From contig CDRNVI010000148.1 of the NCBI GenBank assembly GCA_977017575.1, positions 124,001 to 188,000 on the forward strand: DNA of 64,000 bases. Direction: 5' to 3'. The position numbers and the translations under genes were made by a program. Positions 6,981 to 11,935 of the stretch are shown piece after piece. The DNA comes from Paramoeba atlantica (taxonomy: Eukaryota; Protista; Discosea). The number at the start of each line of letters is the position of its first letter. The stretch's first letter is position 1. A model generated the notes under the pieces. It ran no database searches, was not told the DNA's origin, and saw nothing but the letters and a program-made list of their open reading frames with translations.

Positions 6981-7478
6981 GATCAAAACAACAAAAAAAC
7001 AACAAAACAAAACAACAACAAAAAAAAAAGATGAAACGTGGAAAAAGATGAAACGAAAGAAGAAAAACGAGAAGGATGGCAAGACCGCTAAAATAGAGCG
7101 CTAAAATTCTTTCTTTTTCCCTTCTCTTTTCTTGCTCTTTGTTTCCTCGAATCCCGAATGGTCAAAATCGAGAAAACTGCTTGAGGAAGGTGTTTAAATA
7201 AATCTAAGGGTTTTTTTCAAAAGGTTTTATTCTTGAAAACTTTGTTTTGAATCCAAACAAATACGTTCGATGGTTCTGGCGGTGAGATCTTGTTGGGTTT
7301 TTTAACAACATCATTTTTTCTTCCACAAAATTTCACCCACAGTTTTTTCTTTTTGTTCCTTGTGAGAAAATAACCCATTGAATCGTAATTCAGGATGTTT
7401 CATAAGTGTTGGTGGGGGAGTTTTGAGCGAAAATCCGAAAATTCACTCACTCTTTCGAGTTCCAACAAAAAAAAAACT

Positions 7479-8516
7479 CTACACCCCCCAAGTCACAGTC
7501 TCAATAAATCTAGCAATGACAGACCCAAATTCTTGTTGAAAAGTGACATCATTATGACCAGCTCTTTCAAATTCATGAAATAATATTGATCTCGAAGGAG
7601 AAAGCTGCTTTCTCTGCCCTTCAACGTATAAATGTTTCCCTTGGTAAGAATGAACAACCATATCTTGTTTCCCATGGAGAATGGCCACACGAATTTCTCT
7701 TGCAACCAAAGGGAGATGAATCTCTGTTTCAAATCGATCAGGAATGTGATCAAAAAGGAGGTTGAAGAGAGAAGATGGGAGCCATCGAATGGGATACCCA
7801 ACCCAATGATTGAGAGCAGCTTCTCGAACAGAACGAAATGGGGCTTCTAAAATAAGCCCTCTCAAAAGTTGTCGTGGTGGTGGTGGGAAAGCAGGTTGGG
7901 GATCATCAACAAGAATTCTTTTCGCAACTCGAGTAGAAATCCCAGTACCAAGTGAATGGCCCCAAAAGAAAACAGAATCAGCTTTTAGTTGTTCAACAAC
8001 AAACTGGTAGATAGTCATTCCATCTGTGACAACTCCATCTTCGGAGGGTGAACCCTCAGAATCGCCAAATCCTCGATAATCAAATGTAACAAGTTCCAAG
8101 TCAGAAGAAGAAGCAATCGAAGGGGGAAGAGAACGAGAAAAAGATTGAATAATCGCTTGATAGGAATATTGTCTTCGATAGAGAGCTCTTGTATCAGCAT
8201 TCCCATGAAAATAGACGATTACCACTTTCATTTTCTTTTTTTCTTTTCCTTCTTCTCTTGAGTTCTTCTTTACAACCCAAACACCAAGTTCATGATTATC
8301 TGGAGTCGTCAATCGATGTTTCACAACATGTGAATTTGAATGTGGCTCCATCCCATAATACCATGACCAAAGACGAAAACGATGTAAAAAGATGAGAAAA
8401 CGAGGGATTGACGGGTAGATGGTTGCCAGAAAACAGAGGATTAGGATCCCAACCATCATGAACAGAACCCATTTTCCAATTGCCAAGAGAAGTTCAAACA
8501 CCCATTCTGGGTCCAT
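7479..8516 (-). CDS. ABHD12: ABHD12-like alpha/beta hydrolase (lipase), single exon, N-terminal TM anchor
   Basis: YFHGNA, DYRGFGDSEGSPSEDG, nucleophile GHSLG, ILEAPF, LHGKQD and AGHND give an intact Ser-Asp-His triad. ATG at 8516 (MDPEW) is preferred over the upstream non-ATG start at 8639. Confidence 0.85.
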   Translation of the reverse strand: MDPEWVFELLLAIGKWVLFMMVGILILCFLATIYPSIPRFLIFLHRFRLWSWYYGMEPHSNSHVVKHRLTTPDNHELGVWVVKKNSREEGKEKKKMKVVIVYFHGNADTRALYRRQYSYQAIIQSFSRSLPPSIASSSDLELVTFDYRGFGDSEGSPSEDGVVTDGMTIYQFVVEQLKADSVFFWGHSLGTGISTRVAKRILVDDPQPAFPPPPRQLLRGLILEAPFRSVREAALNHWVGYPIRWLPSSLFNLLFDHIPDRFETEIHLPLVAREIRVAILHGKQDMVVHSYQGKHLYVEGQRKQLSPSRSILFHEFERAGHNDVTFQQEFGSVIARFIETVTWGV

Positions 8517-8837
8517 TCTTTCTGTGGGGGTTTTGAATTCAATTATTTGCTCACCACGAATTGTTGAAAAAAGAGCGTCAAGCGTGTGAGGAAAACAAAA
8601 CAAAAACAAGAAAGCAAACAAAAAAAAGAAAGCAAACAAAAAACAAAAAAGAGAAGAAACGTGTCCAACCTTAAAATAGTAATATACTTTAAAAGGAAAA
8701 ATACTTTATAAAGGAAATATTTTTTTTCATTGAACTGTTTTCTTCAATCTCATTCTTTCACGCCAACCAACAATGACACCTTCCTCTTTCTTGTCAACAA
8801 AAAACTTTCTTTCCAAAAGACAAAAAAGTGAACCACA

Positions 8838-9428
8838 ATGCAAGCCATTAAATGTGTTGTTGTTGGAGATGGTGCTGTTGGAAAAACTTGTCTTCTGATC
8901 TCTTACACGACCAACGCTTTCCCTGGCGAATACATCCCAACTGTTTTCGACAACTACTCCGCGAATGTGATGGTGGATGGGAAACCTATTAACTTGGGAT
9001 TATGGGATACTGCTGGCCAAGAAGATTACGATCGTCTTCGTCCCCTCTCGTACCCACAAACTGATGTCTTTCTCATCTGTTTTTCTGTCATCTCTCCTGC
9101 TTCATACGAGAACGTTCGAGCGAAGTGGCATCCCGAAGTCCAACACCATTGCCCAACCACAAAATGCCTTGTTGTTGGAACAAAGATTGATTTGAGAGAT
9201 GATGCTGCCGCTCTCCAAAGATTAAAAGAAAAGAATTTGGAACCCATTTCCTCTCAAATGGGAGATCAATTGGCCAAAGATATTGGTGCTGTGAAGTATA
9301 TGGAATGTTCTGCTTTAACTCAGAAAGGATTGAAAGATGTGTTTGATGAAGGAATTCGAGCTGTCATTGCCCCTGAGAATAAGAAGAAGAGTGGTGGTGG
9401 AAAGAGAGGTGGTTGTATTGTTTTGTAA
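8838..9428 (+). CDS. rac1: Rac1-like Rho GTPase, intronless
   Basis: [51 protein letters not shown], polybasic tail and CAAX (CIVL). Confidence 0.97.
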
Positions 9429-9679
9429 AAACAAAAAAGAGAGAGAAAGAGAGAGAACAAAGAAAAGAGTGATAGGAGTGGGGGTAATTTATTCAAAAAG
9501 AAAAGATAAATAAAAAACAAACCTTTTTTTTGAAAACACTTTTTCGAAACAAAAAACGAAAATCCTTTTAAAGAAAACGAAAACCATTTTCATTGAACCA
9601 TTTTCATCAGGTACATTTTGATTGGTCTCTTTCTTTTTTCTTTTGTCTCCGATCGACAAAACCTGAAACCAAGAAGGCG

Positions 9680-10273
9680 ATGCCTCAAGAGCTCAAATGT
9701 GTTGTTGTTGGAAATGCAGGTGTTGGGAAGACTTGTCTTCTTATCTCATACACGAGCAACACTTTCCCTTCCCCTGACGAATTCATCCCAACCATTTTGG
9801 ATGACTATGCGGCAAATGTGATGGTAGACAACAAAAAAGTCATGTTGTCAGTGTGGGATACACCTTGCCCTGCTTACTCAGGATTTACTCGCATTCGTGT
9901 CTCCGCGTACCCAAACACTGATGTCTTTCTCCTCTGTTTTTCTGTCATCTCTCCTGCTTCATACGAGAACGTTCGAAGGAGGTGGGCTTCAGAAATCCGA
10001 CACTATTGCCCAACCACAAAATGCCTCGTTGTTGGAACAAAGATTGATTTGAGAGATGATGCTGCAACTCTTCAAAGTTTAAAAGAAAAGAATGAGGAAC
10101 CCATTTCCTCTCAAATGGGAGATCAATTGGCCAACGATATTGGTGCTGTGAAGTATATGGAATGTTCTGCTTTAACTCAGAAAGGATTGAAAGATGTGTT
10201 TGATGAAGGAATTCGGGCTGGTCTTAAAAAAAAGAAGAGTGGTGGTAAGAGAGGTGGTTGTATTATTTTGTAA
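9680..10273 (+). CDS. Atypical Rac paralogue with altered P-loop and switch I/II (probable GTPase-deficient form)
   Basis: [46 protein letters not shown] in place of [12 protein letters not shown]. The C-terminal half is nearly identical to 8838-9428. CAAX is CIIL. Confidence 0.9.
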
Positions 10274-10549
10274 AAAGAATGTTTGACAAGGGAATTATTA
10301 AAAAAAAAATATTTATCCTTTCAAAAGAAAAATAAAAATTTTGAATCTTCTTGCACTTGTAAGATCAATTTTTCGATTGGAAAACGAGAATCTTTTCTGT
10401 TTTCTTTTGATTTTGCTGCAATTGGAAAAAAAAAAGGAAGCATAAAATCAAAAAGGAAAAAGAACCAAAAAGCAAACTCGAAATGAAAAGTTTGGACAAA
10501 GACAACAAAGAAGATGGAACAGACTGCATCACAACAGGACCATTCTCTC

Positions 10550-11935
10550 TCAACTGACCTCCAAGCGAGGCTTTTTGTTTGTAATCTCGTTCTGAACAGA
10601 ACCAGTTTGAAAGTTCTTTCTTTTTTTGGTTCCTTCTTCTTCTTCTCCCCCTCGTTTTGCAGGTTTAATTGAACCATCAATGAGAACAAATTCCTTTTTT
10701 TGGGAATGAATATTTGGACATGAGGGATAATAATTTTTTTGAACAGAAAAAACAACCTCGAGAAACTTCTTCAGTGGTTCAGAGGATGCTAAATCAACCG
10801 GGGTCTTTCCCTAATTCTTTTTCTGAGAAATTTTACCACAGAATTTACCAACTAAAAGAACCCATACACACAACCTTTGAATCTTTTGCTTGAGTGTCAG
10901 CACCATATTCACATAAGAGCTTCACAAGAGCAAAATCCTCTCTGAAAGCTGCAAGATGAAGACAGGTTTTACCATCCTGGAGAAAAAGATGTCAAAAATA
11001 GAAATAAAATTATAAAATTTGAAGAGAAAATGAAACCAGATCTGTATGAGTGATATTAGCACCTCTCTTCAATAAAAATTCAGCAACATCTACCCTCTGC
11101 CATGAAGAGCGACTCAGAGCGATCAAAGGTGAAATACCATTACAGATTAGGTTGACATCCACTCCAGATTCAACAAGAGTTTGGACCACAGGTAAAGAGA
11201 GTTCGAAGAACGCACAAAGGTCATGGAGAACACTCCGATTCTGAACAAAAAACGTGAATCTTTGTGTCTTATGTCATGTTCAACAAAATGAGATTGACTG
11301 CTGCAGGAAAAACAAAAAAAAACCTCAAAAGTGTTTTCAGCTCCATTTTCCAAAAGCAATTCAATCATCTCAATCTTTTGAGATTGACAAGCAACAAAAA
11401 GAGGTGTCCGAGGTTGAGAGTCATAAATGGTGGACGTCCCATTAATTGGGCAATTCTTCGATATCAAGAACCTTGCAAACTGAAGATTTCTCTGTCGGCA
11501 AGCATAACAAAGAGGGGCAACTGTTATTTCCTACTCATATTTTTTAGTCTTCAATTTTTTTGGACTCAAAGAAAAGGAAAAATTGAAAAACAAAGAAAAA
11601 CCCCTTCCAATTTTTCAATCATGGAAGTGACAATTTGTGGGTCATACACCGAAAAACCAATGAGCGCCCCATCTTTTCCGTTCACCTCAGATGAGATTCT
11701 CTTAATATCTGCGCCATTTTTAATTAAAATTTCGACCATTTCAACATCACCTCTTTGACAAGCAATTCGCAAGGGATAGTCAAATCGCGGCTGAAGAAAA
11801 AGCTTCAAAAATCGAAATTGGAGAAATTTGGAGTGGAAAGAAAAACCTGTCCTCGAGGAACATCATTGATCCCGTGATTTGTTCGAAGGAGAACTTGGCG
11901 AGCTTTCTCACAATCCCCTTCTCGCACAGCATCAT
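10550..11935 (-). CDS. Ankyrin-repeat protein, multi-exon
   Basis: Exons encode YPLRIACQRGDVEMVEILIKNGAD, TPLFVACQSQKIEMIELLLENGAE, GKTCLHLAAFREDFALVKLLCEYGAD and GKTPVDLA. Last exon reads EFVLIDGSIKPAKRGGEEEE...LEVS*. Start codon is uncertain. Confidence 0.8.

Follow-up and report, generated by a model that had tools for sequence, protein, structure and literature searches.

The 64,000-nucleotide (nt) stretch of the Paramoeba atlantica genome analyzed here (contig CDRNVI010000148.1, positions 124,001 to 188,000; hereafter the window; G+C content, 36.6%) contains two adjacent Rac genes, which we refer to as RacA and RacB (Table 1; all positions are those of the window). RacA falls in a 90% cluster with Paramoeba Racs. 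The RacB ATG, at 9680, lies within a longer mechanical open reading frame (ORF) that begins at a TTG codon at 9593. A first-pass annotation of the window, made from the sequence alone, described RacB as a twin of RacA whose switch II had been selectively destroyed; as set out below, the remodeling is borne out at the residue level, whereas the parent of RacB appears to be a different Rac.

Table 1. Positions of RacA, RacB, and the altered or retained parts of RacB in the window.
Feature	Position	Strand	Basis
RacA, canonical Rac gene, 196 amino acids (aa), intronless	8838-9428	+	ORF; Pfam Ras (PF00071), E = 1e-51
RacB, Rac paralog with remodeled P-loop, switch I, and switch II, 197 aa, intronless	9680-10273	+	ORF; Pfam Ras (PF00071), E = 4e-40
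RacB P-loop, GNAGVGKT (D11N, G12A, A13G); Walker A Lys and Thr retained	9710-9733	+	codon alignment
RacB switch I, 2-aa insertion (FP to FPSP), Y32F, V36I, F37L, N39D; T35 and Y40 retained	9755-9808	+	codon alignment with RacA and L044
RacB switch II, rewritten; DxxG glycine and catalytic Gln61 lost, 2 aa inserted	9857-9907	+	alignment
RacB block nearly identical to RacA 9051-9361 (92.9%), mosaic of gene-conversion tracts	9908-10218	+	alignment, synonymous divergence
RacB polybasic tail and CAAX box (CIIL)	10226-10270	+	translation

By descent and predicted fold, RacB is a member of the Rho/Rac family. The solved structures nearest to it are human Rac1, Rac2, and Rac3 (E ~1e-70), which align from end to end with gaps in the two switches only, and the match to Rac1 extends across residues 2-195 (E = 1.6e-70). 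The Rho insert (beta5/alpha4) is present, with residues 117-140 aligned to Rac1 ungapped, and the AlphaFold model of RacB places a helix there at 128-136. This model displays the Rac fold (Foldseek TM scores of 0.81-0.86 to Rac1 and Rac3), and the core is modeled with confidence in both RacB and RacA. The low confidence of the switches (predicted local distance difference test values of ~48-49 in switch I and 56-64 in switch II) is not specific to RacB, being equally low in the RacA control; we therefore dropped the model as evidence that the RacB switches are destroyed. Assembly error is excluded as the source of the unusual residues, with contigs of independent runs from 2015 and 2023-24 matching the RacB sequence at zero differences.

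Every RacB change listed by the first-pass annotation (G12A, A13G, the 2-aa switch I insertion, Y32F, F37L, and A59P/G60C/Q61P) is present in the alignment, and to these can be added D11N, V36I, N39D, L55V, P69V, L70S, and S71A. The three altered P-loop codons read AAT GCA GGT in RacB and in a related locus on another contig, L001, versus GAT GGA GCT in the canonical-type contigs L044 and L002 (all described below). In switch I, FPGEY has become FPSPDEF by way of an insertion that resembles a near-tandem duplication (TTCCCT to TTCCCT-TCCCCT). The G3 region in switch II reads DTPC followed by another proline, which removes both the DxxG motif and Gln61; glycine and glutamine occupy positions 60 and 61 in 55 of the 56 canonical Racs compared. 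Because of these two losses, RacB is not expected to be a canonical switch enzyme. A good part of the G domain is nevertheless retained, as had been claimed: GxxxxGKT in G1 with K16 and T17, T35 in G2, D57, TKID (TKxD) in G4, CSAL (SAL) in G5, the polybasic tail, and the CAAX box. The tail would provide RacB with the same membrane targeting signal as RacA, and the final leucine of the CAAX box presumably specifies geranylgeranylation, following general CAAX rules.

The changes are strongly concentrated. Among the 56 canonical Racs, 97 columns reach a conservation of 90% or more, and RacB departs from the consensus at 22 of them. The 38 columns of the P-loop, switch I, and switch II account for 17 of these differences, and the 59 remaining columns for 5 (Fisher p = 5e-5). 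Hence, the clustering is not a matter of chance, and the annotated focus on functional residues holds. RacB and RacA are distinguished by three insertions or deletions (6, 6, and 12 nt), namely, the two switch insertions and a deletion in the tail, none of which disturbs the frame. The 197-aa reading frame is intact, as are those of the sister copies, with none of the frame disruption by which a pseudogene would be recognized. We also considered a compensated frameshift as the origin of the new switch II. This was dropped because the downstream G-Y/F-T-R-I-R residues are in-frame variants of the E-G-Y-A-R-I-R found in a normal Rac of this organism, P0019, as judged by eye from the codon alignment.

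The close match to RacA that led to the description of the genes as twins is real over the later part of RacB. The 56-nt run quoted in the first-pass annotation occurs exactly twice, at 9303 and 10160; it lies in a stretch of 311 nt, beginning at the Y72-P73 codons and reaching the GGAATTCG run, that aligns without gaps at 92.9% identity, and the longest identical stretch covers 80 nt (9279-9358 in RacA and 10136-10215 in RacB). Together with the adjacency and common orientation of the genes, this is what would be seen if RacB were a recent whole-gene tandem duplicate of RacA, in which functional residues of the N-terminal part were selectively changed and the rest is too young to have diverged. 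Synonymous sites argue otherwise. By the Nei-Gojobori method, synonymous divergence (dS) between the two genes is 0.57 in codons 1-80 versus 0.095 in codons 81-182, a sixfold difference (21 of 52 versus 6 of 67 sites; Fisher p = 6e-5), with nonsynonymous divergence (dN) of 0.31 and 0.075, respectively. The homology is bounded by the start and stop codons, beyond which the 5' and 3' flanks are unrelated. In addition, the N-terminal third of RacB is separated from another Rac sequence of this organism, L044c, by a dS of only 0.06, compared with 0.57 from RacA, and tracts of RacA type and of P0019 type alternate along the gene. We accordingly give a tandem duplication of RacA very little probability.

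This alternation is evident from the sites that distinguish RacA from P0019, 46 in all: RacB matches P0019 at 21 of them and RacA at 11, and agrees with neither at the other 14. Sites of RacA type are grouped in tracts at residues 31-33, 87-91, 110, and 137-175; the P0019 state is kept at 87-91 by P0018 (the protein encoded by L001) and at 137-175 by P0017 (encoded by L002). At the nucleotide level, RacB equals RacA at 9949-9970 where L001 was compared, which marks a conversion tract. The resemblance between RacB and RacA is thus the outcome of patchy gene conversion onto a P0019-type backbone, and the twin-like appearance is due to RacA-like genes having overwritten patches of the rest of the gene. 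A second canonical Rac in the European Nucleotide Archive assembly that also holds RacA and RacB (ERZ24900291; L004:3001-3591), which is identical to the EukProt Paramoeba atlantica protein P013956, provides a measure of how canonical Racs evolve here. It is 97% identical to RacA in protein, at a saturated dS of 1.0-1.7 and a dN of 0.01; canonical Racs of this genome are therefore under extreme constraint.

The identity of the backbone was approached by protein search with RacB residues 1-85, which returned three close matches only (P0016, P0018, and P0019), the remainder being ordinary Racs at no more than 60% identity. P0016 is RacB itself, and all of these closest relatives (69-100% identity) are Rac paralogs of the same organism. 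P0018, which is 89% identical, is encoded on a different contig of the same assembly, whereas P0019, at 69%, is a P. atlantica transcript from MMETSP0151. P0019 begins with MPQELK, as does RacB, and its switches are normal (DTAGQEGYARIR, Y32, and F37). An exact look-up of P0019 in assemblies gave no record, so this canonical parent is known from transcriptome-type contigs only, and a scan of metagenome contigs with P0019 gave no match above 65%. DNA of P0019 type comes from L044, which encodes P0138, a member of the P0019 cluster.

Apart from the P-loop, codons 1-27 of this P0019/P0138-type Rac equal those of the RacB-type copies, and the RIR signature is common to both; unlike RacB, it has no insertions and normal switch residues. 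Within the first 80 codons, 25 nonsynonymous changes, 3 synonymous ones, and two in-frame insertions of 6 nt set RacB apart from the P0019/L044 type; dN is 0.157 at the dS of 0.06 noted above for L044c, whereas elsewhere in the gene dN is 0.03-0.04 at a dS of ~0.05. These values point to descent of RacB from a P0019/L044-type Rac with normal switches and not from RacA. Because dS to the L044 type is only 0.06, the remodeling is also evolutionarily young. Of the annotated young duplicate, the youth therefore stands and the derivation from the neighboring gene does not.

Further copies fall between the canonical and the fully remodeled forms. L002 combines remodeled switches with a canonical P-loop. 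It is, like L044, a contig of ~1.1 kb from Joint Genome Institute sample 3300017035, and the two are identical throughout the 429-nt 5' flank, the 3' flank, and the coding sequence except for one nonsynonymous difference and codons 28-80, where they are separated by 22 nonsynonymous and 3 synonymous changes as well as by two insertions or deletions of 6 nt. They are either two real near-identical loci, alleles that differ in a cassette, or assembly chimeras among paralogs. The remodeled design is thus found in at least three copies (RacB, L001/P0018, and L002/P0017), all of which keep a full-length ORF, K16/T17, T35, D57, G4, G5, and CAAX. A canonical GDGAVGKT P-loop is likewise joined to a remodeled switch II in a contig over 9680-9962 from the DNA-type runs X3 and X4, and P0137 has a changed P-loop together with normal switches. 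The sequences form a series that runs from canonical (P0019 and P0138) through remodeled switches (P0017) to a P-loop that is also changed (P0018 and RacB). Within it, RacB and L001 alone rest on genome contigs, and some of the transcript contigs may be chimeras between near-identical copies.

L001 shares just ~1.8 kb with the window: pieces of the 3' end of RacA, the spacer, the gene of RacB type, and ~700 nt downstream of it. We dropped the possibility that it is an allele of the window locus, given this limited extent and outer flanks that differ on both sides, and L001 is best regarded as a paralogous locus. Upstream of its RacB-type gene (L001:3142-3484) are two overlapping fragments that match the RacA 3' end and 3' untranslated region (window 9304-9468 and 9404-9569). 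The segmental duplication therefore seems to have begun inside RacA and to have been partly re-duplicated later.

Comparison of the two copies suggests that switch II is still changing between them. The downstream noncoding flank is diverged by 1.2-1.9% and the coding sequence by 4.7%, with 20 of the 28 coding mismatches lying within 9851-10016. In the 55 nt of switch II proper (9851-9905), there are 9 nonsynonymous and 0 synonymous changes, against flanks diverged by 1.6% (Poisson p = 4e-7). Most of the insertions and deletions in the noncoding flanks of the duplicate are not multiples of 3. Because L001 has the RacA and P0019 state at most of the nine switch II sites, RacB appears to be the derived form in this region.

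RacB is transcribed. Run X1 (2015; recorded as "RNA?") is an RNA run, because its contigs are spliced and leave the spacers between and just after the Rac genes and the upstream hydrolase gene uncovered. Specifically, they skip 10693-10755, 10810-10873, and 10976-11035, which are GT..AG introns of a minus-strand gene downstream of RacB, and X1 has no coverage of the spacers (9171-9671 and 10173-10339) or of the hydrolase gene, with no contigs over 7000-8500. A 323-nt contig of this run is identical to RacB 9731-10053, spanning both switches, and includes a T at 10004 that separates the window copy from L002 and L001; a 237-nt contig is identical to RacA 8838-9074. Transcripts of RacB, whose absence the first-pass annotation had named as telling against its reading, are thus in evidence. 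Since the runs are stored as contigs, they do not rank RacA and RacB by expression level.

Whether the remodeling reflects selection was assessed by comparing the P0019/L044-type with the remodeled sequences, taking codons 28-80 as a cassette. Nonsynonymous change is ~5 times as frequent in the cassette as outside it, with dS similar in the two parts (Fisher p = 2.5e-6), and cassette dN exceeds the pooled dS (p = 0.0025). The ratio of dN to dS (omega) is 2.3-2.6 in the cassette and ~0.7 in the remainder, estimates that are confounded by gene conversion. Overall, the selection tests are suggestive and not decisive.

These tests bear most directly on the possibility that RacB is a transcribed but functionless young duplicate, that is, an unprocessed pseudogene in early decay whose switch loops have drifted while conversion from neighboring functional Racs keeps the rest intact. 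Several observations favor such decay and weigh against a functional RacB. Taken by itself, the cassette does not show an omega significantly above 1 (p = 0.09-0.16), and if the replacement of switch II is taken as a single complex event, omega falls to ~1.3 and is again not significant. The cassette is therefore compatible with neutral evolution, and omega among the remodeled copies is close to 1 (~0.7-1.1 overall). The lineage is very young (dS 0.06) and confined to one organism: the search with residues 1-85 found no ortholog with the switch II of RacB outside it, and hence no long-term conservation. In so young a lineage, intact frames carry little weight, and conversion, for which tracts are documented above, could keep the remainder of a dead gene looking healthy. 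The AlphaFold model, with its equally uncertain RacA control, gives no information on disorder. On the other side, uniform decay would not predict the fivefold excess of nonsynonymous change in codons 28-80 at similar dS, above the pooled synonymous rate. Both insertions and the tail deletion are also in frame. At least three copies, moreover, retain full-length ORFs with the motifs listed above, and RacB is transcribed. On balance, we consider decay unlikely, albeit a serious possibility.

The best explanation of the copies found places RacB in a subfamily of Rac paralogs that is young and restricted to this species. In its emergence, the stretch from P-loop to switch II would have gained ~25 amino acid-changing substitutions and the two in-frame 6-nt insertions quickly (dS ~0.06), and meanwhile gene conversion from RacA-like genes would have overwritten patches of the remaining gene. 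The retained GxxxxGKT, T35, D57, TKID, and CSAL predict binding of guanine nucleotide and Mg2+, whereas the loss of G12, Y32, the DxxG glycine, and Gln61, together with two inserted switch II residues, predicts very poor hydrolysis, both intrinsic and stimulated by GTPase-activating proteins (GAPs). The same losses predict that switch II would not undergo its normal transition.

Known systems offer partial parallels to such a protein. Rnd1-3 (RhoE) and RhoH of animals resemble RacB in being G domains of the Rho family in which the glycine equivalent to G12 is missing and switch II or Gln61 is changed. Rnd and RhoH proteins are constitutive and GTPase-deficient via loss of G12 or an altered G3/switch II; they are GTP-bound, GAP-insensitive, and prenylated, and are controlled by expression and turnover (PMC13236570). 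RacB carries the Rnd/RhoH-type substitutions described in that source (G12A and Q61P). Unlike these proteins, however, its nearest relatives are Rac paralogs of its own genome, making it an analog and not an ortholog or a member of either group. The switches differ as well: RacB has DTPC and a 2-aa insertion in each of them, whereas Rnd and RhoH retain the glycine of DxxG and are not known to carry switch insertions.

A second parallel is provided by Ras mutants. In H-Ras, Y32F, T35S, and G60A each favor an open "state 1" with low affinity for effectors, and Y32F and G60A, which adopt this effector-incompetent state, have drastically impaired GTPase activity (PMC4867591). RacB naturally pairs Y32F with loss of G60. 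The first-pass annotation proposed a constitutively loaded or decoy Rac with new effector specificity, properties that are conjectural here. A simple reading of RacB as constitutively active is doubtful, as judged from these mutants; they are, however, single laboratory mutations, to which RacB adds Q61P, the insertions, and G12A, and a Rac scaffold may behave differently. The human Rac1 splice variant Rac1b, whose structure is titled as a "self-activating GTPase" (PDB: 1ryf), likewise has an in-frame insertion by switch II that alters cycling. Its insertion is 19 aa long and follows an intact switch II, with G12, G60, and Q61 kept, whereas that of RacB is 2 aa long and lies inside a rewritten switch II.

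Our leading interpretation, for which belief and doubt are evenly balanced, is that RacB is an expressed, non-cycling, hydrolysis-deficient, membrane-anchored Rac, analogous to Rnd/RhoH although independently derived, and more radical than these in having lost the glycine of DxxG. Such a protein would bind nucleotide at the membrane and escape cycling by GAPs and guanine nucleotide exchange factors (GEFs), leaving its control to expression and turnover, as in Rnd/RhoH. The anatomy of the sequence, its mosaic ancestry, the several intact copies, and transcription are observed; nucleotide binding, GTPase deficiency, and the functionality of the protein are what we infer.

Alternatively, RacB-type proteins might act as traps or decoys, either by binding exchange factors in a dominant negative-like manner or as toxin-insensitive or decoy Racs arising from conflict with bacteria that modify Rho-family switch residues. 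The lost DxxG glycine recalls Ras G60A, which is a dominant negative according to Ford et al. (2005), as cited in PMC4722452 and PMC4867591. Furthermore, switch II is still changing between sister copies, as described for L001, and P. atlantica is a stable host of intracellular vibrios (PMC12173713). Switch II is, however, the chief contact for exchange factors, and tight GEF binding would not be expected now that it has been rewritten. The clustered changes between the copies might just as well have come by conversion from a copy that was not sampled, and an interaction with toxins is purely conjectural for these proteins. We thus give the trap or decoy role only slight credence.

Scarcely any probability attaches, in our view, to a stronger form of the conflict idea, in which the remodeled Racs would form a family that is young, still expanding, and positively selected in host-microbe conflict, serving as toxin-insensitive or decoy Racs. 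Here, the replaced Y32, Q61, and switch II surface would be targets of bacterial Rho-modifying effectors as well as of the cell's own GAPs and GEFs, in an amoeba envisaged as permanently housing vibrios and a kinetoplastid endosymbiont. If it held, the genome would preserve the steps from a canonical Rac, through remodeled switches, to a P-loop that is also remodeled.

The value of the locus depends on which of these accounts applies. Most known Rho GTPases of the atypical, non-cycling kind come from animals, and their origins are old and hard to reconstruct, whereas one genome here seems to hold a canonical parent and several very recent derivatives, in which the machinery of hydrolysis and switching is rewritten but not the nucleotide pocket or the lipid anchor. 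If RacB is functional, it would constitute a natural experiment in turning a molecular switch into a constitutive or pseudo-GTPase, with intermediates available for biochemistry. If it is not, it would be a clear case of gene conversion making an unrelated or decaying paralog look like a fresh twin, and a caution for the reading of tandem duplicates from sequence alone.

The surroundings of the gene pair contain several further features. Immediately upstream of RacA, on the minus strand, is an alpha/beta-hydrolase gene (7479-8639; Pfam Abhydrolase_1/6 and Hydrolase_4). An A-rich low-complexity stretch with caaaac and gaaagcaaac motifs (8503-8669), also upstream of RacA, is covered at 50-100 times the depth of the adjoining sequence in X3 and X4, both DNA-type runs, and is therefore a simple or dispersed repeat. 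In contigs of runs X2, X3, and X4, 8650 is linked to 11308 with 13 other letters between, a junction that would bypass both Rac genes. It is probably a repeat artifact, because the anchoring side is only 21 nt long and lies inside the A-rich repeat; it could alternatively represent a haplotype without the Rac pair. Downstream of RacB, the minus-strand gene whose introns are spliced in X1 (10690-11470) encodes ankyrin repeats, with Pfam Ank matches on the ORF pieces 11010-11186 and 11147-11464, which were searched separately, and has three very short introns.

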